DNA of 64,000 nucleotides, taken from sequence record NC_041917.1, one strand, 5' to 3'. The notes below the pieces were generated by a model. The model was not told the DNA's origin. It searched no databases and worked only from the letters and a program-made list of their open reading frames with translations. This document shows positions 789 to 15,746 of this stretch, in pieces. Both the position numbers and the translations under genes were made by a program. Each line of letters opens with the position of its first letter. Positions within the stretch are counted from its first letter, which is position 1.

Positions 789-982
789 GGCTAAACGCTT
801 TTTTGTCTCGATTTTCCATTAGTTCCCCTTCCGCGTCTAGTTAGTACTAGGCAGAATCGAAAGGCGTCTTTTCGTGTTGACAGAGCTATATTATCAAACG
901 GTGATCCATTATGCAAGGACTTTTTTCAATAAAAATAAATTTGACAAGTACAAACCGGATGTAGTACTATAATCACAACAAA

Positions 983-1007
983 GAGAAATTTGTAGCCCAC
1001 AGGGTGC
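983..1007 (+). repeat. promoter-locked element E1
   Basis: GAGAAAT-TTGTAG-CCCACAGGGTGC; promoter TTGACA 941/TACTAT 965-970. Confidence 0.85.
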
Positions 1008-1070
1008 CAAGATCCGCCTATTAGAAATTAAATGCGAATGAGAATCATTACCGATTATAGGTATATCTCC

Positions 1071-1096
1071 GCACCCTCTGGGGTATCCGATTTCTC
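1071..1096 (-). repeat. promoter-locked element E2
   Basis: Minus strand GAGAAAT-CGGAT-ACCCCAGAGGGTGC; minus promoter TTGCAT(1137-1132)-17-TATTAT(1114-1109). Confidence 0.9.
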
Positions 1097-1520
1097 TCGT
1101 CTGAAATAATAATATCAAAGTACGGTATAAGATGCAAGGACTTTTTTCGTTTTTGGTGAAAATAGTTTAGATCGTTGTATACGTATAAAGGAAAGGATTT
1201 AAAAGGCGAACAGGTGGAGCGGGGCGAAGGTATAGCAGTACTATATAAACGCCGTGTAATGGTTCCTATGCGTTATATGGGGGCATGTACACGTATAAAG
1301 GAAAGAAACCCTATAGCAGAACTATTTTTAAAAAGATTGCATAAAGTACTTGCAAAGGTTTACCGGTATGATAATATCTATCTCGTCAACACGACACCGC
1401 TCTTTAACAACTTGCTAGACAATTACTTGATAGTGATTCTTCTCTTTAGAAATAAGGAAAAAGAAAAACAAAAAAGTACTTGACGGCAAGAATGGAAAGT
1501 GTAGAATGTTGGTTATCGAA

Positions 1521-1651
1521 AGGCGGTAAGGTTCGCCGGATGATAGGAAAGGGTAACAGGGCAAAATAAAGTACTGTTGCAGTGTGAAGCCGAAAGTGCT
1601 CACATAGCCTTATAAAAAGCTTACTAACTGTAAGTGACCTATCTACCGCCT
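1521..1651 (+). ncRNA. candidate multibranch ncRNA
   Basis: Promoter TTGACG 1480/TAGAAT 1502; AGGCGGTA 1521-1528 and GATAGG 1542-1547 pair with contiguous CCTATC-TACCGCCT 1638-1651; three internal hairpins. Confidence 0.6.
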
Positions 1652-1785
1652 AACGATGTAACAAAAAAAAGTTTCTAAGAAGTTGAAAAAAGTACTTGAC
1701 GGATAGAAACGAAACGTAGTAATATGTGTTCAAGCCAAACGGCTTACCAAACAAACTAAACTAAACTTTTAAGAGGATTTAAATC

Positions 1786-2448
1786 ATGACTACTACCAAC
1801 AACGCAAAAGCTACCCGTATCACTCTGAACTCTATCGTTTTCGCCAATGCTCCAGTACTGGCAGCGGTTGCCGAAGGTGAACAGCCTCACAGCAAAGAAG
1901 TGATCGCACAGCACAAAACGCAGGTAGCGGAGTTTGTTGCAAATCAGGGTAAAGAACTGGCTGGCTACATTCTCGGCAAAGTTGAAACTCCTGACGTGAT
2001 TCTGGCGATTCTGAAAGAAGCCGCTAAACAGGTTCCAGCAGTACAGAAACAACTGGCAGAAGAAGCCGCGAAAGCCGAAGCCGAAGCCGCAGAACAGCGT
2101 AAAAAAGACGCTGAAGCCGCTGAAGCGAAACGCAAAGCTGATGAAGAAGCACTTCAGGCCGAAAAAGATAAAATGTTGAAAATCCTTACTGATAGCGGTC
2201 TGGATCTGGAAATCGCTCAAACAATGGTCGCCGCTGGCCTGAAAGCAAAAGCACCAGCGAACGCACCGAAAAACAGCTACGAACGTGTAGCGGTAACGGT
2301 GAACGGCAAAGGTTATGATGTTCCAGTACGTGGGAACATGAGCGAAGAACTCAAAGCACTGGTTGCTAAAGACGGCGGGGATCGTGAAGCGTTTATCAAC
2401 AAATACCGCAACGAACCAGCAGCAGCAGAAACCAACACCGCCGAATAA
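1786..2448 (+). CDS. coiled-coil protein with H-NS-like C-terminal half
   Basis: GAGGA SD, own promoter; KMLKILTDSGLD..GLKAKA..VNGKGYDVPVRGNMSEELKALVAKDGGDREAFI parallels H-NS as recalled from memory. Confidence 0.5.
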   Translation: MTTTNNAKATRITLNSIVFANAPVLAAVAEGEQPHSKEVIAQHKTQVAEFVANQGKELAGYILGKVETPDVILAILKEAAKQVPAVQKQLAEEAAKAEAEAAEQRKKDAEAAEAKRKADEEALQAEKDKMLKILTDSGLDLEIAQTMVAAGLKAKAPANAPKNSYERVAVTVNGKGYDVPVRGNMSEELKALVAKDGGDREAFINKYRNEPAAAETNTAE

Positions 2449-2468
2449 TATCACGGCGTAACGCGAAA

Positions 2469-2486
2469 GGGGGCTAACTAGCCCCC
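2469..2486 (+). terminator. GC hairpin after 1786 gene
   Basis: GGGGGC-TAACTA-GCCCCC; weak U-tract. Confidence 0.5.
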
Positions 2487-2578
2487 TAAGCCGTTCTAAC
2501 AGTACTGTAATGCAATCGGTTATAGTACTGTTAAAACGTCTTAGAAACGATCCTACGGCGTTCTACAATACCTTTTAA

Positions 2579-2863
2579 GTGAGAGTAAACGCTATGGAAC
2601 TAAAACCCATTACAGAGTTAATTGATCCTAAGACAAGGATCGCCCGAACGATGAACGCCGTTAGCAGTACTAAACAAGTATATAGCGGCTATCTGGCTTT
2701 TGTTGTAGATGGGAAGATCCTACAACGCAGGATCTATGATATGGCTTATAATAGCCTTTATGATTCCTGTATGTATATAGTACACCAGAAAGTTAACTAT
2801 GCCGTTAATGTATCAGCTAAACCAATTAGCGGGGCGTTTAACGTTGAATCCTTAACTGTATAA
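2579..2863 (+). CDS. hypothetical protein
   Basis: ORF track; start uncertain. Confidence 0.45.
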   Translation: MRVNAMELKPITELIDPKTRIARTMNAVSSTKQVYSGYLAFVVDGKILQRRIYDMAYNSLYDSCMYIVHQKVNYAVNVSAKPISGAFNVESLTV

Positions 2864-2933
2864 AATTTAGTTTTATTCATAAATATTAAAGCCGCATTGA
2901 TTGGCAATGCGGCTTTTTATTATGGATTAAATT

Positions 2934-3350
2934 ATGAGATACAAAAAACCTGAACCTGTACATATTCAAGGAAAATGCGTTATAGATGGATGTGACAATC
3001 TACAGGCAGTAGTTAAGAAAAACAAATACGGGGCAAGATGTAGCAAACATCTTAGGGAATCATGGCAATCTAATGATCCTGAAATTTTCAAGTATCTAAG
3101 CATTAAAAGATTATATGGATTAGAAAAAGAAGACTATATAAAACTACTTGAATCACAAGATTATAAGTGTTACATTTGTGGAACTCATCAAGATGATAGC
3201 AGTAGAGAAGTATTATATGTTGACCATGATCACAGTACTAATAAAATCCGTGGGTTATTATGTCATCATTGTAATACTGGTATAGGAAATTTTAAAGATG
3301 ATCCTGAACTCTTACAACGTGCTATAGACTATTTGAAAAAGAATTCATAA
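2934..3350 (+). CDS. endonuclease VII-family HNH endonuclease
   Basis: CYICG..VDHDH.T.KIRGLLCHHCNTGIGNFKDD signature. Confidence 0.85.
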   Translation: MRYKKPEPVHIQGKCVIDGCDNLQAVVKKNKYGARCSKHLRESWQSNDPEIFKYLSIKRLYGLEKEDYIKLLESQDYKCYICGTHQDDSSREVLYVDHDHSTNKIRGLLCHHCNTGIGNFKDDPELLQRAIDYLKKNS

Positions 3351-3415
3351 AGTACTTGCAATAAGTTTTAAGTACTGTAGAATATCCTATATCGAAACAA
3401 CACGGAGTAAATGAA

Positions 3416-3640
3416 ATGAGATTAAGTAAACTGTTAGCGGAGTTGTCGAAGGTTGCAGAACTTGCGAAAGTACACGGCAACAATGATCCTGATATTTCTT
3501 TTTGGCATGATGAAATTGAAACAATCGAACATTTAGAAGTATCATTCCCGCAAGATCTGGATGATGCCAGAATACCGACTAAAGTACTATCGGAAACTGA
3601 GAAAGGAAACTTTTCATTTAGATTAGTACTACCAGAATAA
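3416..3640 (+). CDS. hypothetical early protein
   Basis: Own promoter, GGAG SD. Confidence 0.75.
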   Translation: MRLSKLLAELSKVAELAKVHGNNDPDISFWHDEIETIEHLEVSFPQDLDDARIPTKVLSETEKGNFSFRLVLPE

Positions 3641-3699
3641 TCTTTACAAAAATGGGGTTGACAGCCAGCCCCAAAAAATGCAATAATACATACAAGCCA

Positions 3700-3725
3700 G
3701 AGAAATGGCGTAACCCACAGGGTGC
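3700..3725 (+). repeat. promoter-locked element E3
   Basis: GAGAAAT-GGCGTA-ACCCACAGGGTGC; TTGACA 3658. Confidence 0.85.
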
Positions 3726-3770
3726 GGAGATCCGTCCGTAGAAAATTCAGTACTTAATAGATATATCTCG

Positions 3771-3796
3771 GCACCCTCTAGGGTATCCGATTTCTC
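3771..3796 (-). repeat. promoter-locked element E4
   Basis: 3771-3800 is 29/30 identical to 1071-1100; minus promoter TTGCTT(3837-3832)-17-CATAAT(3814-3809). Confidence 0.9.
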
Positions 3797-3941
3797 TCGT
3801 ATGTAAGTATTATGCCAGTACTGAGAACATAAAGCAAGGGGTAAACGAAAATAAAAATTAAAATTCAAATGAAAAAGTACTTGCAATAAGTTTTAAGTAC
3901 TGTATACTTACCTTATCGAAACAAATGAAAGGATTTAAGAA

Positions 3942-4334: not shown

Positions 4335-4373
4335 TACTGTATAATCTTTTATATCGAAACGGGAGATATAAAC

Positions 4374-5464: not shown

Positions 5465-5519
5465 TTTAAAAAAGGGGTTGACTACGGTCAGCCCTTTGTA
5501 GTACTATAGTATCACTCCA

Positions 5520-5546
5520 GCGAAATGGACTAACCCTATAGGGTGC
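5520..5546 (+). repeat. promoter-locked element E5
   Basis: GCGAAAT-GGACTA-ACCCTATAGGGTGC; 5514-5592 identical to 15714-15792. Confidence 0.95.
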
Positions 5547-5653
5547 AGTACTGTACCTATAATAAAAATAATTAAAATTCAAATGAAAAAGTACTTGCAT
5601 TAAGTATTGAGTCATGTATAATCATTATATCGAAAGCAAACGAGGGTTTAACG

Positions 5654-5830
5654 ATGGATCATTTAATCGCATTACTTAATGCCTTTTGTATTAAACATGG
5701 GTTAGTACCTGCTAGTGCCGATGAAATGCTAATCGAGTATTTGGGTACTGAAAATCCAGATCCTGCAATTGTTTCATGGTTACAAGCTTATATTGTACTG
5801 TGGGACTGTACAAGTGATTTAGGTTTATAA
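5654..5830 (+). CDS. small hypothetical protein (58 aa)
   Basis: GAGG SD, own promoter. Confidence 0.65.
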   Translation: MDHLIALLNAFCIKHGLVPASADEMLIEYLGTENPDPAIVSWLQAYIVLWDCTSDLGL

Positions 5831-5902
5831 TTAAAATAGTACTTGCAATAATATGTGAGTACTGTATAATTCTTTATATCGAAAACAAACGAGGATTTTT
5901 AA

Positions 5903-6331
5903 ATGAGAACATGTAAAGAGTGTGGTAATGATTGCAAGTTAGATGTAAATGAAATCGTTAACCATTATAACGAAGATGGGAAGATTGATTTTGATTTAGA
6001 TGCGGATCATGTTGCAATTCCTGAATTAACTGACGCCGAAAGTAATATGCAAAATCCAGTACTACAAACGGCATTCAATTTTTCCGGTGATGTACCTTGC
6101 ATTAACTACGGGTTCAATTCTGGCGGTTATGAAAAATTCCAGTACTTTATTTGTGCTGATGGTGGTTGTTTAGGGATCGGGACTGTAATTAATGAGTTCC
6201 ATAAAGTGAACTTTAATGATCCTGATGATAAGCAATGGTATATCGTAGGGGTTGAAGTTAATTACGAAAATACCGAACTGGTAGACGATCACACAGGGGA
6301 TTATATACCAGCAGCGTACAGCGAAGACTAA
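5903..6331 (+). CDS. conserved phage hypothetical protein
   Basis: GAGGA SD; DGGCL..VNYENTEL.DDHTG.YIPAAY pattern familiar from phage hypotheticals. Confidence 0.8.
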   Translation: MRTCKECGNDCKLDVNEIVNHYNEDGKIDFDLDADHVAIPELTDAESNMQNPVLQTAFNFSGDVPCINYGFNSGGYEKFQYFICADGGCLGIGTVINEFHKVNFNDPDDKQWYIVGVEVNYENTELVDDHTGDYIPAAYSED

Positions 6332-6371
6332 ACAAAAGCAACGGGGATCTATGATCCCCTTTTGAGGTTAT

Positions 6372-6635
6372 ATGAATTTACATTATTGTACCAGAAAATT
6401 AGTTGTTGCTTTTGATTGTAGTTCTGATAAAATACATTGTGTAATATACAGAAAGGGAACACCACGCACAGATCACTGGAAAGTACTGCAATCCTATACA
6501 ATGCAACGTAAAGGGTTTAAGCACCTTGATAGCAGGACACAAAAGGCATGTTTACGGCAAGTACTTAAAGTTATGCGTAATCGTATTACACAGGCGTTAC
6601 ATGTTGCATTAACTACCAAGGATATGATAGAATGA
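6372..6635 (+). CDS. hypothetical protein
   Basis: GAGG SD. Confidence 0.7.
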   Translation: MNLHYCTRKLVVAFDCSSDKIHCVIYRKGTPRTDHWKVLQSYTMQRKGFKHLDSRTQKACLRQVLKVMRNRITQALHVALTTKDMIE

Positions 6636-6799
6636 AATATGTAATCTATTATGATCGCAGTACTAAAAGCTGGTGGGGGTACTGGATTGATGAAAATGAA
6701 AATCAGTTAGGTGAAGCTGTTTTTGAATATCAAAAAGAAGATTGCCTGATACTCTTAGGAGAAGTCAAGGAAAATCGTCGGAATTTAATTCAAAAATAA
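6632..6799 (+). CDS. small hypothetical protein (55 aa)
   Basis: ATGA overlap with upstream stop. Confidence 0.6.
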   Translation: MKYVIYYDRSTKSWWGYWIDENENQLGEAVFEYQKEDCLILLGEVKENRRNLIQK

Positions 6800-6853
6800 A
6801 TGAAAAAAGTACTTGCATTCATGTGAGTACTTTTATATAATACTTATATCGAA

Positions 6854-6880
6854 GCGAAATTCGAATTACCCACAGGGTGC
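6854..6880 (+). repeat. promoter-locked element E6
   Basis: GCGAAAT-TCGAATT-ACCCACAGGGTGC; TTGCAT 6813-17-TATAAT 6836. Confidence 0.9.
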
Positions 6881-7028
6881 GGAAGTATATCTATGAAAAA
6901 AAGAATTAAAATTTAAATGAAAAAGTACTTGCATTAGATCGTGGGTATGGTATTATAACTACATCGAGAGGCGGCAATCTCTTGATAATAAAATTAATCA
7001 AATAACTTTTAAGAGAGAGAGAAAGAAA

Positions 7029-7337
7029 ATGTCTAAAGCAAACGCGATAGTATCAATGATCCCTGCAATCCTTCCAATCGGTACTGTAGTAGTTCACAAT
7101 TACGGTGAGTTCACTCATGGTACTATTGTATCTCATGTTGCTGGTGATATGTATGAAGTATTCTTTCCTGTTGAGAACTGCCCACAAACTGCAAAGTACT
7201 TGACAGATGTTAATTCTCGTGTACGTAAAATTCGCTTAAATGCTGGTTTCTTTATCAGCCGCTTTAACTCACTTGCAGCAGTTAAGATCGCACAGAAGAA
7301 GTATAAAAAATCTGGTCTAAAACTGGAAAGCATTTAA
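7029..7337 (+). CDS. hypothetical protein, paralogue of 13449-13781
   Basis: Shared GT.VVHNY..F.HGTI and GFF.S motifs. Confidence 0.85.
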   Translation: MSKANAIVSMIPAILPIGTVVVHNYGEFTHGTIVSHVAGDMYEVFFPVENCPQTAKYLTDVNSRVRKIRLNAGFFISRFNSLAAVKIAQKKYKKSGLKLESI

Positions 7338-7417
7338 TTGTAAAATCATTCACAAAAGTACTTTACTTATATCGTAGAGTACTTTATAATGAAGTTACTA
7401 AGTAAGAGGAAGCAAAT

Positions 7418-7486
7418 ATGAAACGCTGGCATGAAGTACTGTTGTTTGTTTTGTTTATTCTAGTAACTTGTGTAAATTTTAATTGA
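7418..7486 (+). CDS. 22-aa hydrophobic peptide
   Basis: Own promoter, AAGAGG SD; MKRWHEVLLFVLFILVTCVNFN. Confidence 0.5.
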   Translation: MKRWHEVLLFVLFILVTCVNFN

Positions 7487-7496
7487 GAGGTTCAAA

Positions 7497-7736
7497 ATGT
7501 CTTTATATAAAGTAGTAGTGAACTGTATTAGTGTTGGTATGGCTGGATCTCATACTCTGTTAGTATCTGGCGACTTCCCGCATATTAACGAGGCAAGAAT
7601 AGGGATCAATGAGTGGGTGGCTAATGAGTACGCCGGACGCTTAGATGTTAACGTAACATTTTTGAATCATTCAGATCAAATTTATGTTACTGATTTGAAA
7701 TCATCAGATTATGATAAAGTTATTATAATGCGTTAA
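7497..7736 (+). CDS. hypothetical protein
   Basis: GAGG SD. Confidence 0.7.
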   Translation: MSLYKVVVNCISVGMAGSHTLLVSGDFPHINEARIGINEWVANEYAGRLDVNVTFLNHSDQIYVTDLKSSDYDKVIIMR

Positions 7737-7790
7737 CTATATTATCAAAAGTACTTGCAAATAGAAAGCGAGTACTTTATAATGAAGTTA
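7733..7790 (+). promoter_or_regulatory. duplicated early promoter bracketed by two AGTACT sites
   Basis: 58 nt identical to 8362-8419; TTGCAA 7755-17-TATAAT 7778. Confidence 0.9.
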
Positions 7791-7812
7791 CTTTAAGTAA
7801 GAGGATATTGAA

Positions 7813-8061
7813 ATGGAAAATGAAAACATCTTTACAGTTTATGCTTCTGATGCAATAACTCATATTCATCTCATTGATGAAATTGTAAAAAATACGGATG
7901 TAAAAGTATTAGCAGGTAATCCTGATGGATTATACTTTGATAATCCAATGCCGTCTATTACTTACAGTACCAAATTGAGTTATGAAGATTTTAAGAAAGT
8001 ACTGGACAAATCAACCTCATTAGAGTATCATCTTTGTATAGAAGAAGATTGGTATTGTTAA
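7813..8061 (+). CDS. hypothetical protein
   Basis: Own promoter, GAGGA SD. Confidence 0.75.
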   Translation: MENENIFTVYASDAITHIHLIDEIVKNTDVKVLAGNPDGLYFDNPMPSITYSTKLSYEDFKKVLDKSTSLEYHLCIEEDWYC

Positions 8062-8086
8062 TTAACTTTTAAGTGAGATATAATTA

Positions 8087-8365
8087 ATGAAAGCATACGA
8101 ACATAAGACCATGACAGTTGCGGATCTTATTGCTAAACTGGAAAGTACTTATCCGAACAAAAACGCCGTTATCGTTGCGGATCTATGGGACGAAGACGAT
8201 ATTCGTGAAGTAGCACAGGATATTAATATTCAGCTCGACCGCGAAGAATGTCGAGTAGTAGCGGCTTATCTGGATGATACCGCAGATAAGACAAATGGTT
8301 ATAATGATGATAACATTAAGTTAGCCATTTATCAAGTTATTAATTTGGGGCTTATTAATCCTTAA
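8087..8365 (+). CDS. hypothetical protein
   Basis: ORF track, GAG SD. Confidence 0.75.
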   Translation: MKAYEHKTMTVADLIAKLESTYPNKNAVIVADLWDEDDIREVAQDINIQLDREECRVVAAYLDDTADKTNGYNDDNIKLAIYQVINLGLINP

Positions 8366-8455
8366 CTATATTATCAAAAGTACTTGCAAATAGAAAGCGA
8401 GTACTTTATAATGAAGTTATTGAATCGGTACTTATTAACTAAGAGGAAGTATATC

Positions 8456-8659
8456 ATGGCTCAAAAAGATCGTCGTTACTCAATCGCAGCGGAGTTTACT
8501 GGTCACATCTCAGGTAAGAAGCGTCAAGTACTGCGTTTCTGTGGGGCGTGGGTATCGGATCATGCGACACGTCACGAAGCCGAACAAGAGATCGTGAAGT
8601 GGAAAGCCAGCGGTGAAGTGCCAGCGGTTCAATCACAGCGTGTGCTGGTGGAAGCGTAA
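8456..8659 (+). CDS. small conserved phage protein
   Basis: GAGGA SD; start moved to ATG 8456; YSIAAEFTG..VLRFCG. Confidence 0.75.
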   Translation: MAQKDRRYSIAAEFTGHISGKKRQVLRFCGAWVSDHATRHEAEQEIVKWKASGEVPAVQSQRVLVEA

Positions 8660-8735
8660 CACATTATCAAAAGTACTTGCAAACAGAAAGCGAGTACTTT
8701 ATAATGGTTACACTATTAAGCGAGAGGATAACAAA

Positions 8736-9035
8736 ATGAAATTTACAGTACAAGTCGAAGGGGTTGATCTAGTATCAGTCGTCGCAGCATTACAAGAAGC
8801 CGCTAGACTTATCGAAGATGGGAATACTTCTGGATTTGATCGCAATGAAGATGGGAATTTTTATTTTGTAGAAGGCGATCAGCACTTGTTTAGTACTGGT
8901 GAATCATGTACAATGCATACAGCCGTTTGTGAAATGGTGGAGCGTTTACATCAAGGCAATCATTATGATAATGATGAAGAACGCCAAGCTGATATTGATG
9001 TGATGAATAAATTACAAAAAGTAACAGGACGCTAA
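8736..9035 (+). CDS. hypothetical protein
   Basis: GAGAGG SD; start moved to ATG 8736. Confidence 0.75.
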   Translation: MKFTVQVEGVDLVSVVAALQEAARLIEDGNTSGFDRNEDGNFYFVEGDQHLFSTGESCTMHTAVCEMVERLHQGNHYDNDEERQADIDVMNKLQKVTGR

Positions 9036-9040
9036 ACAAC

Positions 9041-9070
9041 AAGTACTGGTGAAATATCCAGTACTGTTTT
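9041..9070 (+). terminator. intrinsic terminator
   Basis: AGTACTGG-TGAAATAT-CCAGTACT followed by T run. Confidence 0.7.
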
Positions 9071-9104
9071 TATATACAGCTTATTCTTTAATAGATACAT
9101 TTTC

Positions 9105-9131
9105 GCACCCTGTGGGTCAAAGACATTTCGC
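9105..9131 (-). repeat. promoter-locked element E7
   Basis: Minus strand GCGAAAT-GTCTTTG-ACCCACAGGGTGC; TTGACA(9173-9168)-17-TATTAT(9150-9145). Confidence 0.9.
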
Positions 9132-9261
9132 TGTCTATGAAGTAATAATACAGTACTTTGGTAATGGTGTCAAGGATTAAATTAAAATTAAAACGAAAAA
9201 AAGCACTTGTAATTATCATGAAGTACTGTATAATCTTTTATATCGAAACGGGAGAATTGAA

Positions 9262-9564
9262 ATGAGATTTATCAAATACAGTTTGATAGGGTATTTTGGT
9301 ATGGCATTACTTTGTACTGTACTTGTTATATGCATTACCGTATTAGATTATTTCGATGGTGATTTTTACGTTAAGTATATCTATGGTGGTTCACATTTCC
9401 GTTATGTAATTGAATTTGCATTACCTGCGATATTTAAAAGTAGCTTTTGGGGCGTACCGTGTGCTATACTGATAGCATGGAAAGTTGATCGTATCAAGGC
9501 GAATGATATGAATAACCATAGTATTAAAGAGCATTTTGGTATTGACTACCCTAAGAAGGATTGA
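9262..9564 (+). CDS. putative membrane protein
   Basis: Two hydrophobic segments; own promoter. Confidence 0.7.
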   Translation: MRFIKYSLIGYFGMALLCTVLVICITVLDYFDGDFYVKYIYGGSHFRYVIEFALPAIFKSSFWGVPCAILIAWKVDRIKANDMNNHSIKEHFGIDYPKKD

Positions 9565-9568
9565 TATA

Positions 9569-9814
9569 ATGAGTACCACATTGAAAGCACTGGTGTCATT
9601 ATTATTCTCAGTACTGTTAACATTCTTATTGTTAACGGAGGCAAGAGATGGTATTGTATGGCGGTTAACAATGTTAGCATATGAAATTGAAGATACTTGG
9701 TATTCTTTCTTGACATATGGTAGCAATGGAGTGTATGCTATATTTCTAGCTGGTATACTTTACATTTTATTTTGTTTAATGTTTGCTATGATGGGAGATA
9801 GTCATGAGAGTTGA
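9569..9814 (+). CDS. putative membrane protein
   Basis: Two hydrophobic segments; AAGGA SD. Confidence 0.65.
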   Translation: MSTTLKALVSLLFSVLLTFLLLTEARDGIVWRLTMLAYEIEDTWYSFLTYGSNGVYAIFLAGILYILFCLMFAMMGDSHES

Positions 9815-9968
9815 GCCAATCAGTAGAATTATTAAGTTAGCAAGTAGTACTGTCAAGAATGAATATCCAAAAAATATTGTTGACAGTACTAGCAGTACGG
9901 TGGTACATTTAGGTCAAGCAACAACGGGTTGCTATGATAAACGTGGTTTAATAAAATGAGGATTGAAA

Positions 9969-10826
9969 ATGGGTAAGCATATTTTTTGGGGTTGTTTAGG
10001 TCTGATTGGTTTACTCGCCATTGGTGCGTTGTTGGGTTCGTTCTATACGGTAGACCAACAGGATCGCGGTGTAGTACTGACTAACGGTAAAATTACAGAA
10101 ATTGCCGAGCCTGGTCTGAACTGGAAAAAGCCATTCGTTACATCGGTGATTGAAATTCCGGTAACTGGTCAGAACAAAAGTTATCCGAACCTTAAAGCGT
10201 ACAGCCGCGATCAGCAGCCAGCAGATATGTCGGTTTCCGTATCGTTCGCCGTTCCAGCGGGTAAAGTGGGGGATCTGTATAGTACTTTCGGGACTATCGA
10301 AAACCTTACAGCACGTGTAATTGACCGTCAAGTACCGCAAGCAGTTGAAAACGTATTTGGTCAGTTTAACGCGATTACCGCCGTACAGGATCGTAATAAG
10401 TTAGTTACTAACTTAAACATTGCAATTAAAAAGGCGATGGAAAACTATCCGGTAATTATTGAATCGGTACAGGTTGAAAACTTATCATTCAGCCCTGCAT
10501 ATGAAAAATCAATTGAAGAACGTATGCAAGCCGAGATCGCAGTAACTAAACGTGAGCAGGACTTTGCACAGGCTAAGATCTCAGCGTCAATCACGGTTGC
10601 CAACGCACAGGCCGAAGCTGATAGCCAGCTTGCTAAGGCAACAGCAGCAGCGAAAGCGACACGCCTACAGGGTGAAGCTGATGCAGCAGCAATTAAGGCG
10701 AAGTCTGACGCACTTAGCAATAATCCGCAACTCGTACAGTTGGCAGCAGTTGACAAGTGGGATGGCGTACTACCTACACAAATGGTTCCAGGTTCTACCG
10801 TTCCATTCGTGAATCTCAACAAGTAA
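9969..10826 (+). CDS. SPFH/band-7 (prohibitin-like) protein
   Basis: N-terminal TM, YTVDQQDRGVV..G..EPGLNWK.PF, coiled-coil, KWDG.LP tail. Confidence 0.9.
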   Translation: MGKHIFWGCLGLIGLLAIGALLGSFYTVDQQDRGVVLTNGKITEIAEPGLNWKKPFVTSVIEIPVTGQNKSYPNLKAYSRDQQPADMSVSVSFAVPAGKVGDLYSTFGTIENLTARVIDRQVPQAVENVFGQFNAITAVQDRNKLVTNLNIAIKKAMENYPVIIESVQVENLSFSPAYEKSIEERMQAEIAVTKREQDFAQAKISASITVANAQAEADSQLAKATAAAKATRLQGEADAAAIKAKSDALSNNPQLVQLAAVDKWDGVLPTQMVPGSTVPFVNLNK

Positions 10827-10958
10827 TTGTATCACAAAAAGCCTCGCAAAGTCGAGGCTTTTTTATTATGAACACAATTAAAATTCAAATGTAAAAGTAC
10901 TTGTATTATATGGCTGATGCTGTTATAGTACTTATATCGAAGCACAGGAGATAATCAA

Positions 10959-11138
10959 ATGGAAGAACTATTGAAGTACTGGAAACGGTTTAGTAATGTA
11001 CCAGTTAATAACAATGACGAGATAGAAGAAAGTTTCTTGCATTTTGATATTGGTACTGATAGAATAGATGTGTGGCAATGGTTCGAAGCACAACATTCTG
11101 ATTTTAATGTATCAAAACTTTTAAGTGGAGAAGTATAA
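10959..11138 (+). CDS. small conserved phage protein (59 aa)
   Basis: CAGGAG SD, own promoter; NDEIEESFLHF..GT.R.DVWQWFE. Confidence 0.7.
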   Translation: MEELLKYWKRFSNVPVNNNDEIEESFLHFDIGTDRIDVWQWFEAQHSDFNVSKLLSGEV

Positions 11139-11563
11139 TGAAAGTACTTTATATTAGTCAAGCCCCACAAGAAGTACAAAAAGCTTTTGGGCATGTACGG
11201 GCGTTGTTTCCTGATGTAAGTCAAGTACTTTATGATCAGGATTGTCGCTGGTGCTATGAAGGGGAAAACAATTACTTCCCTGATTTCGACACAAAAGAAG
11301 TTGATACAAATATACTTGAATCCGGTGCTGATTCACAGTATAATATTGAAGTACCAGTACTTTACAAGATGTTTAAAGAAGTGCTGGTGGCTAAGTGTGA
11401 AGTACCAGATAAGCCAACGGTAACACTTACACAGATCGACCATGATTTGTGGGAAGTAAATGTAGGCGTGGCTGCACATACATGGGAAACTTTAGAATCT
11501 GGTTTAGCAGAATTTAAAGATTCGATTAATGAATATCAATTAAAAATTCCACGTTCTATGTAA
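11138..11563 (+). CDS. hypothetical protein
   Basis: TAATG coupling to upstream gene. Confidence 0.75.
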   Translation: MKVLYISQAPQEVQKAFGHVRALFPDVSQVLYDQDCRWCYEGENNYFPDFDTKEVDTNILESGADSQYNIEVPVLYKMFKEVLVAKCEVPDKPTVTLTQIDHDLWEVNVGVAAHTWETLESGLAEFKDSINEYQLKIPRSM

Positions 11564-11639
11564 TTATTACCAAAAGTACTTGACAGAAGTTATCGAGTAC
11601 TTTATAATAATCACATCAACCACACAAGAGGCACTAAAA

Positions 11640-11960
11640 ATGGAAAAGACAGTATATTGCGGCACAAGAACATTGGCACGTGAAGCAGCAAAAGAACTCA
11701 ACGGCAAATTTAAAGATATGGGCAAAGATGCTCCATATGGTGAACGTTGGGTAGTACTGATTGAAGTTCCAGACGTTCAAGAAGAAGTACATACTCAATT
11801 CGTTGATACTCTGCCAGAAGATGCAGTACGTGTACTGAATCAACCAACAGGCTTTAAAGGTGAACAGACGTTGAAGACTTCCAATAACAAGCCTGTACGG
11901 GTGTTGTGGCGTCGTTCTAAAGTTACTATGCGACTAGCCGCACATCTGGCGAAAGCTTAA
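11640..11960 (+). CDS. hypothetical protein
   Basis: GAGG SD; start moved to ATG 11640. Confidence 0.75.
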   Translation: MEKTVYCGTRTLAREAAKELNGKFKDMGKDAPYGERWVVLIEVPDVQEEVHTQFVDTLPEDAVRVLNQPTGFKGEQTLKTSNNKPVRVLWRRSKVTMRLAAHLAKA

Positions 11961-12012
11961 CAGTAACCGATTGGGGGCGTTATATGCCCCCTTAATTAAG
12001 TGAGTACACTAC

Positions 12013-12255
12013 ATGAAAAAGGTTCAAGTAGATAGTACACAATTACGAATACATTTCAAGGCACAAACAAAAGTACTTGACAAAGCTATTCGTGTTGTGA
12101 AAGAATACAACACTGGTAAAGTAAGGCCAAGACGATTAGGGTGTGGATTGTTTTCAGTACTGGATGTTTCCCGTAACGAGCGAATCGTTATTAAAGATAA
12201 CACACTGAATCTAATGACGCATGAACAATATAATAAATTCGTTGAACGCCGTTGA
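12013..12255 (+). CDS. small basic protein, possible ParE/RelE-like fold
   Basis: 80 aa, basic; SVLDV..NERIV..LMTHEQYN resembles ParE-like family tail. Confidence 0.4.
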   Translation: MKKVQVDSTQLRIHFKAQTKVLDKAIRVVKEYNTGKVRPRRLGCGLFSVLDVSRNERIVIKDNTLNLMTHEQYNKFVERR

Positions 12256-12307
12256 CATAATCCCCTAAATACGTATATAATAACTTATACGATTAGGGGA
12301 TTTTATT

Positions 12308-12775
12308 ATGCCTGGAAAATTCAGATCCAAGAGTGGTGCTACACTAGCAGGACACTCTGATAAATGGAGCGATGAGAATCGTTCAGCAAGTAGCCATGAA
12401 GCGGGGCAAGGCAGTAAAGGCAGTCGCAATCAAGGTACTGGCATTCAAGGAAAAGTTAACGCAATGCCATCACAGGGAATAGATACTTCCCGCATGGATA
12501 AATCAGAAAAGCTAAAGTACTTTAATTCATTAGGGTTACTACAGCCAGAACAAAAGCAAGAACTTTCTATAAAAACATGGCCTGATACTTTACGTAAAGT
12601 ATTCAAAGACGAGCCAGTATATATCAAAGACATTACCGCCGCTTTAAAATCAGTACCGCAAGCAAACTACCCGCAAGCAGTACAAGCAGGATTCAACGCC
12701 ACACAAGAGACAATGAATCAAACCGATGATGTTTATGACATATACGCCGCTATCATGCAAGCCATTCAGGGTTAA
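12308..12775 (+). CDS. hypothetical protein with Gly/Ser-rich N-terminus
   Basis: Own promoter and SD. Confidence 0.75.
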   Translation: MPGKFRSKSGATLAGHSDKWSDENRSASSHEAGQGSKGSRNQGTGIQGKVNAMPSQGIDTSRMDKSEKLKYFNSLGLLQPEQKQELSIKTWPDTLRKVFKDEPVYIKDITAALKSVPQANYPQAVQAGFNATQETMNQTDDVYDIYAAIMQAIQG

Positions 12776-12841
12776 AAAAAGGGTTGACTTAGGTCAGCCC
12801 TTTTGCTATTGTATCAGTACTTAAACAAAAGGAACAAAATC

Positions 12842-13192
12842 ATGAGAAAACTTCTTTTAGCTACATTACTCTTTGCTGGTGCTGTAAACGCACAAACTTA
12901 TGTTTGCAACACTTACACAGTATATCAGGGTGTTGGGAATGGTCAGTACAATAAAATTGATAACAGTACGCCATCATTCAGTACTATCATCGAAACATCA
13001 CGCGATGTAATTAAAGTGTATGTTAAAGGTGAAGAAAGTACTTATACCGAATTCTGGAAAGATTACAATGATTATCGTAATGATACCGGATTGATTAAAC
13101 AGTCTGGTAATGAATTCGAAATCAAAACAGCGATTGAAGATCCTACAGGAACCGCATACATTCCAGTAAAAATAGAATACCATTGCAAATAA
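12842..13192 (+). CDS. exported protein with signal peptide
   Basis: MRKLLLATLLFAGAVNA; AAGGA SD. Confidence 0.75.
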   Translation: MRKLLLATLLFAGAVNAQTYVCNTYTVYQGVGNGQYNKIDNSTPSFSTIIETSRDVIKVYVKGEESTYTEFWKDYNDYRNDTGLIKQSGNEFEIKTAIEDPTGTAYIPVKIEYHCK

Positions 13193-13247
13193 TTAAAATA
13201 AAGACTTGACTCGTTCAGGTCTTTTTTTGTATACTATATTCAATCCA

Positions 13248-13274
13248 GCGAAATGGACTAACCCTATAGGGTAC
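13248..13274 (+). repeat. promoter-locked element E8
   Basis: GCGAAAT-GGACTA-ACCCTATAGGGTAC; TTGACT 13206/TATACT 13230. Confidence 0.9.
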
Positions 13275-13448
13275 ATAAATGTATCTATTAGATATAGTAC
13301 TGGATGTTTGTACAGTACTAAAAGAATTTAAAAATAAGATGAAAAAGTCCTTGCATTAAAATACAGATTTGCTATTATAACTACATCGAGAGGCGGCAAT
13401 CTCTTGGTAAACAAACTTTAAAACATTTTAATTGAGAGAGAAATAAAC

Positions 13449-13781
13449 ATGGCTAACTTCAACGCACAGAACAAAGTAGACCGTACTCCTGCTCACACTT
13501 TAGAAGTAGGTACAATCGTAGTACACAACTACACTACATTCTGTCATGGTACTATTACTGGCTATGCTCCAGATGGTGCTTACCATGTTTATTTCCCTAC
13601 TGATATGGCACCTAACATGCCTAAGTATCAAGCTAACACAGTAGAAGCCACGCAAAACCGTACCCGTACATTGACGGCTGGATCTGGTTTCTTTGTAAGC
13701 AAACACAAGTCATTCGCGTCTATTCGTGAACTGCAACGCAAGTACCGCCAGAAAGGTGCTGCACTGGAAATGTTAGCATAA
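13449..13781 (+). CDS. hypothetical protein, paralogue of 7029-7337
   Basis: Shared motifs and identical 34-nt leader. Confidence 0.85.
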   Translation: MANFNAQNKVDRTPAHTLEVGTIVVHNYTTFCHGTITGYAPDGAYHVYFPTDMAPNMPKYQANTVEATQNRTRTLTAGSGFFVSKHKSFASIRELQRKYRQKGAALEMLA

Positions 13782-13853
13782 CAAATTAAAAAGGGGTTGA
13801 CAATGTTCAGCCCCTTTGTTATAGTATCAGTACTTAAACGAGAGGATAACAAT

Positions 13854-14075
13854 ATGTTTACTGCATTAGAATCTTTGGTTAGAGAAGAAGTTTCGGAAGA
13901 AGAAGTAAAAGCAGGTTTAAAACTGCGTGATCTTTGCATCCAGAATGATCTGGATATTCCCGAAGTACTAATGACGTTGCATTACTTCAATGGTATTGAA
14001 CCAAAATTAATCATTGACAAAGTATCAGCGTTAAACACGCCGTTAATTGAAAATGCAATGCATGTACTGCATTAA
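13854..14075 (+). CDS. hypothetical protein
   Basis: GAGAGG SD; start moved to ATG 13854. Confidence 0.75.
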   Translation: MFTALESLVREEVSEEEVKAGLKLRDLCIQNDLDIPEVLMTLHYFNGIEPKLIIDKVSALNTPLIENAMHVLH

Positions 14076-14197
14076 TGAAAACTATTATTAATGCAATCAT
14101 TCTATCATTTATAATGATACTAGTACAACGTCAAACATCCTTCCCACTGCTTTGTATTATAGCAGTACTGACAGGATTGTTAATTTATAAATGGTAA
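14075..14197 (+). CDS. 40-aa membrane peptide
   Basis: TAATG coupling; hydrophobic. Confidence 0.5.
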   Translation: MKTIINAIILSFIMILVQRQTSFPLLCIIAVLTGLLIYKW

Positions 14198-14248
14198 AAA
14201 TAAAGGCTTGACACGTTCAAGCCTTTTTGTTATAGTACTATCACTCCA

Positions 14249-14275
14249 GCGAAATGGACTAACCCTATAGGGTGT
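14249..14275 (+). repeat. promoter-locked element E9
   Basis: GCGAAAT-GGACTA-ACCCTATAGGGTGT; TTGACA 14208-17-TATAGT 14231. Confidence 0.9.
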
Positions 14276-14404
14276 AGTACTGTATCTATAATAAAATAAT
14301 TAAAATTTAAATGAAAAAAGTACTTGCATTAAGTTTTAAGTACTGTATAATGTTTTACATAGGGTAAGCAATACCGCTTACCCATATTAAGTGAGAGAAT
14401 CAAA

Positions 14405-14986
14405 ATGAAATTTACTGAACTGAATGCTGAACAACAAGCTAGAGCAATTGAAGTACATCGTGATATTAATTTGGATGATAATAGTATCTGGTGCGACTTC
14501 ATTCAAGAGCGTTTTCATTCAGAACTAAATGAGTTTGGTTTTGAAGAAGTCGAATCACGTTATAGTGGTTTTTGTTCACAAGGTGACGGGGCAAGCTTTA
14601 CCGCTGATAACGTTGATATTGAAAAGTTCTTGCGTAAAACGAAACGCTGGACACACTATCGTTCATTACATGAATTCATTCGCATTAATGATATTACATG
14701 TATAGTTGTACGTGATAACGGTTCGCGTTATGTTCACTACAACACAACCGAAGCCACGTTAAGCGGTAACTGGTATATAGATCTTAGCCCAAAACAAGAA
14801 TCATTGTATACTGAATTAGAAAAAGAGATCGATGATTTTATAACGGAGAAAGGTCAAGAATATTATTCAGAACTTGACAAGCATTATTATCATCTATTGG
14901 AAGATGAACAAGTCAAGGAAACAATAATAGCTAATGAAATGGAATTTGAAGAAGATCCACGCGAAAGCTGCGTAACTTATATCTAA
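14405..14986 (+). CDS. conserved phage/MGE protein with YSGFCSQGDGASF motif
   Basis: Motif recalled from a family often auto-annotated as a TA antitoxin. Confidence 0.6.
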   Translation: MKFTELNAEQQARAIEVHRDINLDDNSIWCDFIQERFHSELNEFGFEEVESRYSGFCSQGDGASFTADNVDIEKFLRKTKRWTHYRSLHEFIRINDITCIVVRDNGSRYVHYNTTEATLSGNWYIDLSPKQESLYTELEKEIDDFITEKGQEYYSELDKHYYHLLEDEQVKETIIANEMEFEEDPRESCVTYI

Positions 14987-15051
14987 ATTCAAAATAGGGA
15001 TTGACAAGTTCAATCCCTTTTGATACTCTATCAGTACTGAAACGGAGTTAT

Positions 15052-15174
15052 ATGAAAAAGAAATATATAGTTCTGTACAGTACTTTAAACGAAGCTTACA
15101 TTCAAGGCCAAAAAATGGAACGCATTGTTCAAGTACTGATTGTTATTTTATTCATTTTGTACTGGATACTGTAA
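15052..15174 (+). CDS. 40-aa peptide with C-terminal TM
   Basis: Own promoter, GGAG SD. Confidence 0.5.
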   Translation: MKKKYIVLYSTLNEAYIQGQKMERIVQVLIVILFILYWIL

Positions 15175-15324
15175 TGAGAATAATCAAGTACTACAATGGT
15201 GTAAGTATTAAAATGATTGATACCGATCATTTTGTAGTACAGAAAGGCCGTATAAAAATTACTTGCAAACGTGCCGTAATTGCATTATACTATTTCTATC
15301 AACTAATCATTAAGTGAGAAGAAA

Positions 15325-15660: not shown

Positions 15661-15719
15661 AAGAATTACAAAAAGTACTTGACTACGGTCAGGTACTTTG
15701 TTATAGTTATATTACTCCA

Positions 15720-15746
15720 GCGAAATGGACTAACCCTATAGGGTGC
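15720..15746 (+). repeat. promoter-locked element E10
   Basis: Identical to E5; TTGACT 15679-17-TATAGT 15702. Confidence 0.95.

Follow-up and report, generated by a model that had tools for sequence, protein, structure and literature searches.

Facing copies of a promoter and double-hairpin leader cassette in Serratia jumbo phage BF: candidate convergent units of the earliest genes

Introduction

What could be the role of two pairs of promoters that face each other near the left end of a jumbo phage genome? An earlier note on this DNA had described the pairs E1/E2 and E3/E4 as facing each other less than 200 bp apart, which the distances between their -35 boxes bear out (197 bp and 180 bp). 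The window, that is, the whole stretch of 64,000 nucleotides analysed, comprises bases 1-64000 of the Serratia jumbo phage BF (NC_041917.1; Eneladusvirus, Rak2-like). Rak2-like jumbo phages, which include BF, CBB, GAP32, the 121Q/PBECO4 group and the RaK2 group, are potential agents for phage therapy and biocontrol. We find that the two pairs are not isolated objects and represent the face-to-face form of a 12-copy, start-site-locked cassette. Related giant viruses from at least four genera have retained this layout, and for that reason it probably serves the earliest genes as a built-in brake or a small-RNA unit and does not act as a DNA switch.

A promoter-locked double-hairpin cassette

A covariance model of the motif detects 12 copies in the 357 kb BF genome, all within 975-18697 and hence confined to the first 19 kb. 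Four of these are E1-E4; the remaining eight are single copies within 5512..18697, seven on the plus strand and one on the minus strand (Table 1). Each cassette opens with a sigma70-type promoter and its predicted +1 A, after which come two hairpins and a short tail; these hairpins and the tail make up the leader, i.e. the predicted first ~50 nt of the cassette RNA. Hairpin 1 begins at about +3 and combines a covarying stem with a G(C/A)GAAA loop, and hairpin 2 has the form ACCC-N3-4-GGGT. In every copy, this double-hairpin motif of ~33 nt spans +3 to +35.

The motif is locked to its promoter. All 52 distinct copies from six phages, those on the minus strand included, have a promoter score of 8-11 of 12; among A positions in the first 22 kb, which served as background, 8% reach 8/12 and 0.9% reach 10/12. 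The predicted +1 A typically lies seven nt 3' of the -10 box (7 nt from the -10 end to the invariant A in 42 copies, 8 nt in 8 and 9 nt in 2). All four stem pairs of hairpin 1 show changes on both sides, with 97.5% of cells paired, and the closing pairs of hairpin 2 are in places G-U, which on the opposite strand would give A/C mismatches. It follows from this covariation and from the G-U pairs that the hairpins are strand-specific. Since seven of the eight single copies have neither a facing partner nor an antisense RNA (the exception being 9087-9139), the primary function of the motif would lie outside the pairs.

In the single copies and in E3, a GGGG...CCCC-type stem encloses the TTGAC of the -35 box, and a T-run comes after most of these stems; E1, E2 and E4 have no stem around the -35 box. 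The 12 copies sit among 43 small ORFs, of which only 7 have a Pfam match with E no higher than 0.01, and the early intergenic spaces each contain a terminator hairpin. Neither the literature nor Rfam yielded a description or family for the double-hairpin motif: Rfam gave zero matches over the 64 kb at the gathering threshold, and chance microRNA-like matches only at E up to 5. The window holds no tRNA or tmRNA.

Table 1. Positions of the two pairs, neighbouring elements and single cassette copies in the window.
Feature	Position	Strand	Details
Second leftward promoter	888..928	-	-35 TTGCAT 916-911; -10 TAATAT 893-888; back-to-back with E1
E1 promoter	941..970	+	-35 TTGACA 941-946; 18 nt spacer; -10 TACTAT 965-970; predicted +1 A 977
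E1 leader motif	975..1025	+	covariance model 45.2 bits, E = 1e-8; hairpin 1 at 980-991, AAA / GAGAAA loop / TTT; hairpin 2 at 995-1005, GCCC-ACA-GGGT, closing pair G-U; then GC and tail starting AAGATCCGCC
Pair 1 inner segment	1006..1072		67 nt between hairpin-2 units
E2 leader motif	1053..1104	-	covariance model 40.9 bits, E = 1.6e-7; hairpin 1 at 1099-1088, CGA / GAGAAA / TCG; hairpin 2 at 1084-1073, ACCC-CAGA-GGGT
E2 promoter	1109..1152	-	A-tract; -35 TTGCAT 1137-1132; 17 nt spacer; -10 TATTAT 1114-1109; predicted +1 A 1102
Terminator-like end of E4 RNA	3646..3672	-	E3 -35 hairpin, then ATTTTTGT (read from sequence)
E3 promoter	3654..3687	+	-35 TTGACA 3658-3663, embedded in GGGG...CCCC hairpin 3654-3672; -10 AATAAT 3682-3687 with extended TG; predicted +1 A 3694; score 11/12 matches
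E3 leader motif	3692..3743	+	covariance model 46.1 bits, E = 6e-9; hairpin 1 at 3696-3709, GCCA / GAGAAA / TGGC; hairpin 2 at 3713-3723, ACCC-ACA-GGGT; tail after
Pair 2 inner segment	3724..3772		exactly 49 nt
E4 leader motif	3753..3804	-	covariance model 43.8 bits, E = 2.6e-8; hairpin 1 at 3799-3788; hairpin 2 at 3784-3773, ACCC-TAGA-GGGT
E4 promoter	3809..3837	-	-35 TTGCTT 3837-3832; 17 nt spacer; -10 CATAAT 3814-3809; predicted +1 A 3802
gp005 proximal promoter	3860..3908	+	UP-like AAAATTCAAATGAAAAAGTAC; TTGCAA; 16 nt spacer; TATACT
Single cassette copies	5512-5564, 6846-6898, 13240-13292, 14241-14293, 15712-15764, 16269-16321, 18645-18697	+	covariance model
Orphan single copy	9087-9139	-	predicted RNA ~100 nt, ends in gp018 terminator

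Anatomy and surroundings of the two pairs

The distances of 63 and 45 nt that the earlier note had placed between the motifs are correct when counted from GGGTGC to GCACCC; from GGGT to ACCC they amount to 67 and 49. The longer inner segment of pair 1 exceeds the standard 49 nt by an 18 nt centre with the mini-hairpin AATGA-gaa-TCATT, which is also present in the Yersinia phage and in Klebsiella KP13-7. The reverse arms of the two pairs (1071-1100 and 3771-3800) are indeed identical at 29 of 30 positions, and over the covariance model E4 and E2 share 85% identity. An A/T-rich, UP-like stretch precedes the E1 promoter on its 5' side.

Pair 1 has no minus-strand terminator. Transcripts from E2 would traverse the second leftward promoter, a 75% copy of the E2 promoter region that has a counterpart in CBB, GAP32 and XbC2; the leftward operon gp371-380 can be reached from E2 only across the genome end. 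For pair 2, the minus-strand E4 RNA is predicted to measure ~155 nt and to end at the hairpin around the -35 box of E3. On the minus strand this stem is weak (4 G-C pairs, a C/A mismatch, 2 pairs) and was not called by the consensus scan; GAP32 pair 2 displays the same terminator-like geometry. On the plus strand, the hairpin is followed by A6. There is no ORF downstream of E4, and gp005 has its own proximal promoter and is therefore independent of E3. Pair 2 lies 5' of gp005 in BF and 3' of the gp005 homologue in CBB and GAP32.

Conservation across jumbo phages

The earlier note had named a lack of conservation in relatives, together with transcription of one strand only, as refuting its case; the convergent arrangement is kept in relatives. 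Pair 1 is present in 8/8 related phages examined, where its position is unchanged across four genera and both of its promoters are preserved; its carriers are BF, pEa_SNUABM_47/12, fHe-Yen9-03, CBB, GAP32, XbC2, Kaldavass, vB_Ec-M-J and KP13-7. Five of the phages that bear pair 1 contain extra pairs, and pairs also occur in uncultured IMG/VR contigs. The E1 promoter is kept in the relatives infecting Yersinia, Pectobacterium, Cronobacter, Xanthomonas, Erwinia, E. coli and Klebsiella. In four genera, both promoters of each pair are conserved as promoters even where their sequence differs (TTGCAT, TTGACT or TTGACA boxes); those on the minus strand have kept their quality and changed their sequence between genera.

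The spacing is fixed as well. Across genera, the gap between the hairpin-2 units is exactly 49 nt in 10/13 pairs, despite the spacer sequence being about half diverged. Members in the plus slot and members in the minus slot each form their own subfamily across genomes; in the Yersinia phage, both plus members bear a sequence of the single-copy type, and gene conversion is apparent there. Over 53 aligned positions, partner arms share 53-66% identity, compared with a family background of 0.60, and the unpaired centre of the pairs measures ~20-40 nt. No ORF is conserved across the pairs on either strand. In CBB and vB_Ec-M-J, whose ends are mapped, every cassette copy lies inside the ~22 kb terminal repeat.

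Proposed convergent early transcription units

Tentatively, and at somewhat less than an even chance, we read each pair as two convergent early transcription units that form a directional brake or insulator through interference together with RNase III-sensitive antisense or hairpin RNA. Host RNA polymerase would initiate at both facing promoters. The predicted starts are opposed and lie 126 nt (977 vs 1102) and 109 nt (3694 vs 3802) apart, so that the two RNAs would be fully complementary over their 5' parts. An RNA that spans both arms could refold into an imperfect hairpin of ~35-40 bp, and the computed energies with both arms made favour this long hairpin (-43 vs -19 kcal/mol in pair 1, -39 vs -26 in pair 2). 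The promoters may interfere with each other through polymerase collision and through the dislodging of a polymerase waiting at the opposite promoter, while the resulting dsRNA or hairpin RNA could be cleaved by host RNase III. The net effect would be a brake or insulator on distal-promoter transcription between adjacent early units, whose downstream genes would each retain their own proximal promoter. Short non-coding RNAs would be the output of the minus-strand copies, and both E4 and the orphan 9087-9139 run into hairpin-plus-T-run ends.

Interference between convergent promoters is an established mechanism (PMC5001618, PMC6593788, PMC4519249). The sequences show the anatomy, the lock to the promoter, the covariation of the hairpins, the conservation and the fixed spacing; the firing of both promoters, the ensuing interference or RNase III cleavage and the binding target of the 5' double hairpin are inferences. 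Promoter activity, RNA ends and relative strengths are predictions. Interference alone does not explain the exact 49 nt spacing. Moreover, the arms are no more complementary than chance pairs from the family, so selection may act on the cassettes alone and the overlap may be incidental.

Alternative explanations

A first alternative, which we hold to be unlikely but of some weight, is that each pair is a dedicated small-RNA gene. It would produce a stable long-hairpin RNA of ~110-130 nt from one or both strands as a regulator or decoy, the latter for instance of a host factor that binds dsRNA or RNA, and the second promoter would yield the mirror product. The long hairpin that the earlier note had seen on either strand was recovered for each unit and on each strand (-42 to -47 kcal/mol, z = -4.5 to -5.2), with 0/200 shuffles folding as well. 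Such stability on both strands, with z about -5, suits a small RNA, as do the absence of an ORF, the conserved unit length and the likeness of the orphan minus copy to a free-standing small RNA. This is countered by arm complementarity that is not kept beyond the family consensus, by the wholly unpaired tails of CBB pair 3, by plus-strand RNAs that have no defined 3' end and by the absence of an Rfam relative.

The position of the motif at +3 to +35 in every copy would also fit a 5' double hairpin that modifies RNA polymerase in cis, by put/nut-like antitermination or by pausing, and an antisense overlap that has no role of its own. Pair 1 would then be the overlap of two distal promoters, rightward for gp001 and leftward for gp371-380 in concatemers or the right terminal repeat. 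A terminator hairpin for read-through in each early intergenic space, a leftward operon beyond the left end and a leftward promoter of proximal type downstream of E2 agree with this, and the phage appears to use antitermination signals, given a boxA-like site at 1398-1410 that is conserved in five phages. We nevertheless consider it rather improbable: E4 and 9087-9139 face no genes and are directly followed by hairpin/T-run ends, an arrangement that would be pointless for a polymerase resistant to termination, the motif has ~33 nt compared with ~70 nt for put, boxA is not adjacent, an N-like protein was not found and the 49 nt rule is left unexplained.

Only a little less probable is that the pairs are by-products of cassette shuffling, in which recombination inserted a reversed copy that was tolerated and not selected, as in the PeSLs of T4-like phages. 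The cassettes resemble PeSLs in joining a GGGG...CCCC terminator stem to an early promoter (PMC2839356, PMC4122927), the plus members of the Yersinia phage carry the mark of gene conversion, and the side of the gp005 homologue that holds pair 2 differs between genera. A tolerated accident does not sit well with a pair 1 that has kept its site and both promoters in four genera, with exact spacing in 10/13 pairs, or with plus-slot and minus-slot members that are separate subfamilies across genomes.

The pairs might also provide timed, class-wide shut-off or processing of pre-early transcripts, which we judge improbable. Here, the double hairpin would label every distal-promoter transcript of the terminal-repeat region, and the complement of this tag would be transcribed only at the face-to-face pairs. 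The anti-tag RNAs or hairpins would pair in trans with hairpin-2 and the conserved loop of all tagged RNAs and thereby expose them to RNase III, the fixed 49 nt spacer setting the RNA geometry.

T4 oriF and oriG are the model for a further, very doubtful proposal, a transcription-primed replication origin at which G-rich RNAs (GGGTGCGGAG) would form an R-loop over the A/T-rich centre and prime diverging leading strands. A G-cluster does come right after each start, the ~20 nt centre is A/T-rich, the site is in a large non-coding region where cumulative GC skew turns, and the phage group has a T4-type replisome (PMC5259590). However, the skew in this region just tracks gene orientation, two or three pairs and eight single copies lie within 20 kb, and the covariation of hairpin 1 speaks for a structured RNA whose loop is conserved, something that an R-loop primer would not require.

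Among the four readings offered by the earlier note, antisense or dsRNA and transcriptional interference are consistent with the conservation of both promoters in four genera; neither a cruciform nor a pair of recombination sites bordering an invertible segment is supported. Although ~30 nt inverted repeats do flank a short segment, we reject this DNA-level element as highly improbable, the arms being 53-66% alike and at family background, the 20-40 nt centre unpaired, the inner segment devoid of promoter or gene, and its orientation, which the note had suggested comparing in relatives, the same in 13/13 pairs. Searches of the BF genome for serine (PF00239) and tyrosine (PF00589) recombinases gave zero matches with working positive controls, as did one for the Y1 transposase/RAYT family PF01797, whose control matched in 6 genomes. 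A type I toxin-antitoxin or cis-antisense pair was rejected too: the ORFs over the two BF pairs lie in different frames and are not kept in the Yersinia phage.

Implications and comparison with known systems

Together with their family, the pairs mark out by sequence a class of earliest transcripts that is confined to the long terminal repeat. In T5, the terminal repeat region carries the pre-early genes. If both promoters fire, a conserved, repeated convergent unit of fixed geometry that has no coding output would amount to a new form of phage early-gene control, and two -10 boxes, two hairpin loops and one spacer length offer experimental handles on it. In jumbo-phage assemblies that are still unfinished, the cassette also offers a marker for locating the terminal repeat or early region.

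Convergent promoters about 60-220 bp apart are known from coliphage 186 (pR/pL), P2 (Pe/Pc) and pCF10 (prgQ/prgX), and in these switches interference and antisense RNA both contribute. The BF pairs share the predicted layout of facing promoters. In the known switches, however, a repressor or peptide signal decides between two coding programmes, whereas pair 2 transcripts have no private coding target and each genome carries the unit two or three times. Unlike 186 pR/pL, the BF pairs do not have a gene set for each promoter and a balancing regulator, and none of the 43 early ORFs was recognised as a DNA-binding regulator. The early transcripts of T7 contain imperfect intergenic RNase III hairpins of 20-40 bp, similar in kind to those predicted here; these are single hairpins in one long transcript, not the product of two opposed promoters.

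Early transcripts with lambda nut (boxA/boxB) or HK022 put likewise carry, within their first tens of nucleotides and 5' of terminators, small hairpins whose loops are rich in purines. The BF motif differs in being half the size of put and in having no adjacent boxA (the only boxA-like site lies 3' of a different promoter); some of its copies point at terminators and not at genes, and an N-like protein was not identified. With REPINs and BIMEs, the pairs have in common inverted doublets of hairpin repeats, a fixed spacer, one long fold and single copies alongside. They depart from REPINs in that BF has no RAYT, every copy is promoter-locked and the copies are gathered within 19 kb instead of dispersed.

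The promoter-early stem-loop (PeSL) cassettes of T4-type phages (PMC2839356, PMC4122927) are likewise short, repeated intergenic cassettes that join a GGGG...CCCC terminator stem-loop to a strong sigma70-type early promoter, cluster among small genes of unknown function and bear signs of recombination and gene conversion between copies. In BF, by contrast, the -35 box lies inside the terminator stem and a start-site-locked double-hairpin leader follows, the family is limited to the terminal-repeat region and some copies stand face-to-face with a 49 nt spacer. The likeness to PeSLs such as those of RB49/phi1 is drawn at the level of layout, where the BF cassettes share with them both the stem-loop and promoter composite and the repetition within a plastic region of small ORFs.

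Two convergent pairs in the left region of phage BF

Both head-to-head pairs, in which a plus-strand promoter cassette (E1 in pair 1, E3 in pair 2) faces a minus-strand one (E2 and E4, respectively), lie in DNA without annotation in the record of Serratia phage BF (KY630187/NC_041917), a Rak2-like jumbo myovirus of the genus Eneladusvirus with a genome of 357,154 bp. The window covers positions 1-64000 of that record, and a megablast with 800-4000 gave a 100% match at the same coordinates. The promoter boxes and spacings given for E1-E4 in the earlier note were all found to be correct when re-read in the sequence, and recomputation confirmed that the reverse arms of the two pairs are identical at 29/30 positions. 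The long hairpin proposed for either strand also stands: on both strands of both units the fold has a free energy of -42 to -47 kcal/mol, its z-score ranging from -4.5 to -5.2, and 0/200 shuffles fold equally well. No ORF across the pairs is conserved in comparison with relatives, Rfam returned no relevant match at gathering or permissive thresholds, and ARAGORN gave no match.

Positions of the pairs and of neighboring features in the window (promoters and transcripts are predicted)
Feature	Position	Strand	Setting
Inverted repeat	479-577
Repeat block	690-800		about 0.7 kb from the record start
Terminator	780-797	+	end of the repeat block
Second leftward promoter	916-888	-	downstream of E2, back-to-back with E1
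Pair 1 (E1/E2)	941-1137	+/-	inside a 1.8 kb gene-free stretch ahead of the first gene gp001 (1786-2448)
Proximal-type promoter	1351-1379	+	just upstream of gp001
boxA-like site	1398-1410	+	past promoter 1351-1379
gp003	2934-3350		between the two pairs
Pair 2 (E3/E4)	3658-3837	+/-	between gp004 (3416-3640) and gp005 (3942-4334)
E3 RNA		+	crossing the E4 arm and entering the gp005 region
E4 RNA		-	through the E3 arm into the hairpin carrying the E3 -35
UP-like stretch	3860-3885		same before most early genes
gp005 own proximal promoter	3881-3908
Orphan cassette	9087-9139 (within 9040-9175)	-	between gp018 and gp019, facing no gene

A family of cassettes with a double-hairpin leader

E1-E4 belong to a family of 12 cassettes in BF, a number obtained from a genome pattern scan and again from a covariance model of the cassette (R1, 53 positions). 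All copies lie within 975-18697 of the 357 kb genome, nine on the plus strand and three (E2, E4 and the orphan) on the minus strand. A nearly invariant CA follows the predicted sigma70-type promoter of every copy. Among 52 distinct copies from six phages, the distance from the end of the -10 hexamer to the invariant A is 7 nt in 42, 8 nt in eight and 9 nt in two, and promoter scores reach 8-11 of 12; in the same promoter-rich 22 kb, the background of A positions reaching 8/12 is 8%, and 0.9% reach 10/12. Hairpin 1 begins at about +3 and combines the loop G(C/A)GAAA with a stem of 3-5 bp, the sequence of which is freely variable (CCA/TGG, GAA/TTC, GCA/TGC, AAA/TTT, CGA/TCG, GCCA/TGGC). Hairpin 2 (ACCC-N3-4-GGGT) lies 3-5 nt past hairpin 1 and is followed by GC and then by the tail GAGAT-NNN-yCTAT.

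In 53 distinct sequences, both sides have changed in 4/4 pairs of hairpin 1, with 97.5% of cells paired; the covariation score is reached by no shuffle and collapses in slid controls. The underlying alignment was fitted to the model, but the raw sequences also show the compensatory stems plainly. Hairpin 2 is conserved in sequence, and its five G-U closing pairs become A/C mismatches if read on the opposite strand. The covariation argues for an RNA transcribed in the direction of its promoter. The double hairpin itself may serve RNA stability, tag this class of RNAs for a protein or act on the polymerase. A Pfam search of the 43 early ORFs (window 1-20577) yielded no RNA-binding candidate for it; the only families were DUF932 (one ORF, E = 6e-35), Band_7 (gp022), Endonuclease_7 (gp003), ParE_like (one ORF matching this toxin domain, E = 9e-13) and DUF5484, besides weak hits.

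Other likenesses of the motif were discarded. Hairpin 2 contains CTATAGGG, and reading it as a T7-like promoter was rejected: the TATA is missing from the ACA-loop copies, and no single-subunit RNA polymerase was found, a weak negative given that the control genomes gave nothing either. Likenesses to a DnaA box, an IHF site, a CRISPR-repeat mimic and a preQ1-like aptamer were poor matches by eye only.

In no relative tested do cassettes occur outside the early or terminal-repeat region. Those of CBB occur at 986-20930 only and are repeated at the right end, all inside its terminal repeat of 22,456 bp (PMC5259590). Escherichia coli phage vB_Ec-M-J has eight distinct copies (1298-20128) within its annotated 21.5 kb direct terminal repeat, and fHe-Yen9-03, pEa_SNUABM_47, GAP32, XbC2, Kaldavass and Klebsiella phage KP13-7 carry between 7 and 14 copies within 18-24 kb. 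In BF, whose record annotates no terminal repeat, the proximal type of early promoter, an A-tract followed by GTACTTGCA, has 45/54 of its matches in the same 20 kb as the cassettes.

Several further features of this region deserve mention. In the proximal promoters, the UP-like stretch has the sequence ATGAAAAAGTACTTGCA(T/A)TAA and therefore always holds a seven-codon mini-ORF (MKKYLH or MKKYLQ). This mini-ORF lacks a ribosome-binding site and probably arises as a by-product of constraints on the promoter. The repeat block lies near the record start, a position that matches the left physical end in CBB. It is made up of direct and inverted repeats, all short (TAGATGG, GTCTAGAC / CGTCTAGA; families D9 and I14), and could act in packaging or end recognition or as an iteron-like site. 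In the neighboring 42 nt inverted repeat (76% complementary, 15 nt gap), both arms contain GTACTTTATAAT, which forms the -10 region in early promoters of the proximal type. The repeat may represent a third unit of facing promoter-like elements, here lacking the double hairpin, but it shows no convincing -35. An origin of replication marked by GC skew was also considered, but the skew tracks gene orientation and is uninformative.

Conservation and spacing of the pairs

Pair 1 is found upstream of the gp001 homologue in BF, the Erwinia phages, fHe-Yen9-03, CBB, GAP32, XbC2, Kaldavass, vB_Ec-M-J and KP13-7, and thus in Eneladusvirus, Mimasvirus, Asteriusvirus and Alcyoneusvirus. A second pair is present in BF, its Erwinia-phage relatives, the Yersinia phage, CBB, GAP32 and XbC2, and a third in CBB and GAP32. 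Cassette clusters including convergent pairs also occur on uncultured IMG/VR jumbo contigs, where the pattern scan was so loose that most single matches are chance and multi-hit contigs alone were followed. The minus-strand promoters differ in sequence among genera (TTGCAT-17-TATTAT, TTGCAT-17-CATAAT, TTGACT-16-TATAAT, TTGACA-16-TATAAT), yet all remain good predicted promoters.

From the GGGT of the plus member to the ACCC of the minus member there are exactly 49 nt in 10/13 pairs, and the spacers share little sequence except the tails and an A/T-rich centre. The exceptions, pair 1 of BF and of the Yersinia phage (67 nt) and KP13-7 (60 nt), have an extra central mini-hairpin. In single plus copies, hairpin 2 lies 50 nt from the next promoter's -35 in 4/7 cases and 47, 76 and about 90 nt in the rest, so that the pairs are more constrained in length.

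The plus members of both pairs in fHe-Yen9-03 (283-335 and 2547-2599 of the stretch compared) carry the single-copy-type sequence CCAG-C/A-GAAATGG ... ACCCTATAGGGT, whereas BF, CBB and GAP32 keep the pair-type sequence; this is evidence that gene conversion has acted among cassette copies.

The long hairpin and DNA-level alternatives

It does not seem to be the long hairpin that selection maintains. Complementarity between the arms is automatic because both are copies of one family, and the identity of partner arms over the model, 53-66%, is that of the family background (0.60). For the same reason RNAalifold on 12 pairs could not separate long-range from local pairing, and this partner-identity test was used instead. 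Minus members of different pairs in the same genome are 66-85% alike and plus members up to 89%, with BF E3 being 83-85% identical to the pair 1 plus members of CBB and GAP32. We conclude from these comparisons that the pairs either go back to a single ancestral pair or are subject to slot-specific constraints. Pairing between the arms in the long fold is limited to the loops and hairpin 2, the hairpin 1 stems being unable to pair with each other. A transcript that spanned both arms would strongly favor the long hairpin over the local ones (-43.3 vs -18.7 kcal/mol in pair 1, -39.1 vs -26.2 kcal/mol in pair 2).

The same identities lead us to conclude that the arms are not kept matched, as a cruciform or a recombination site would need. 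The cruciform suggested earlier, which is further at odds with the unpaired centre of 20-40 nt, a length that disfavors extrusion, is rejected. The suggestion of an invertible segment between paired recombination sites is likewise rejected: the orientation of the inner segment does not differ among the 13 pairs, and searches that included positive controls found neither a serine nor a tyrosine recombinase in the BF genome. RAYT/REPIN mobility was rejected, the Y1 transposase being absent from the BF genome (positive control included). The gene between the pairs, gp003, encodes an Endonuclease_7-family protein (Pfam E = 6e-25); since it is missing from Erwinia phage pEa_SNUABM_47 and lies ahead of the gp002 homologue in pEa_SNUABM_12, it seems to be a mobile, free-standing nuclease gene and not a partner of the pairs.

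Predicted transcripts and a possible mechanism

In pair 2 of BF and GAP32, a T-run follows the E3 -35 hairpin on the minus strand only. The E4 RNA is predicted to end there after about 155 nt, at a stem that is weak on the minus strand and uncalled by a consensus scan. The orphan, which the Erwinia and Yersinia relatives share, has a strong predicted promoter (TTGACA-17-TATTAT, 11 of 12) and would yield a non-coding RNA of about 100 nt running into the gp018 terminator hairpin. No terminator was found ahead of E2 on the minus strand, a second leftward promoter follows, and beyond the record start in this direction lies the leftward gp371-380 operon of the genome's right end. As far as these predicted elements go, the distal promoters of the two sides would thus be interleaved in a divergent control region with pair 1 at its centre.

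On the rightward side, a boxA-like CGCTCTTTAACAA, a near-perfect match to E. coli rrn and lambda boxA, is located about 15 nt into the transcript of the proximal-type promoter upstream of gp001, and fHe-Yen9-03, CBB, GAP32 and XbC2 keep CGCTCTTTAA at the corresponding position. The main early transcript may accordingly recruit host Nus factors, which would allow the many intergenic terminators to be read through.

Convergent polymerases are known to interfere through collision and the removal of waiting open complexes (PMC5001618, PMC6593788, PMC4519249). Both promoters of a pair would fire when the terminal-repeat DNA enters, and the facing polymerases, here 109-126 nt apart, would interfere in both ways. 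The complementary RNAs or the long hairpin could in addition serve as substrates for RNase III; no phage RNase III was found in BF, so any cutting of double-stranded RNA would fall to the host enzyme. The net effect would be to damp transcription from distal promoters across the pair via interference or RNase III, each flanking gene retaining its own promoter. We put this forward tentatively, as a proposal whose chances fall slightly short of even.

Relation to known systems

Neither the motif nor the pairs are described in the papers found on BF relatives, CBB, phAPEC6 and PeSLs. The closest known system is that of the PeSL terminator-promoter cassettes of T4-type phages (PMC2839356, PMC4122927), to which the present cassettes add a TSS-locked leader, restriction to the terminal repeat and units fixed in a face-to-face arrangement. 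REPIN doublets resemble the pairs in form only. The face-to-face promoters of coliphage 186 and pCF10 are alike in the working of the arrangement, but the BF pairs are without their coding targets and regulators.
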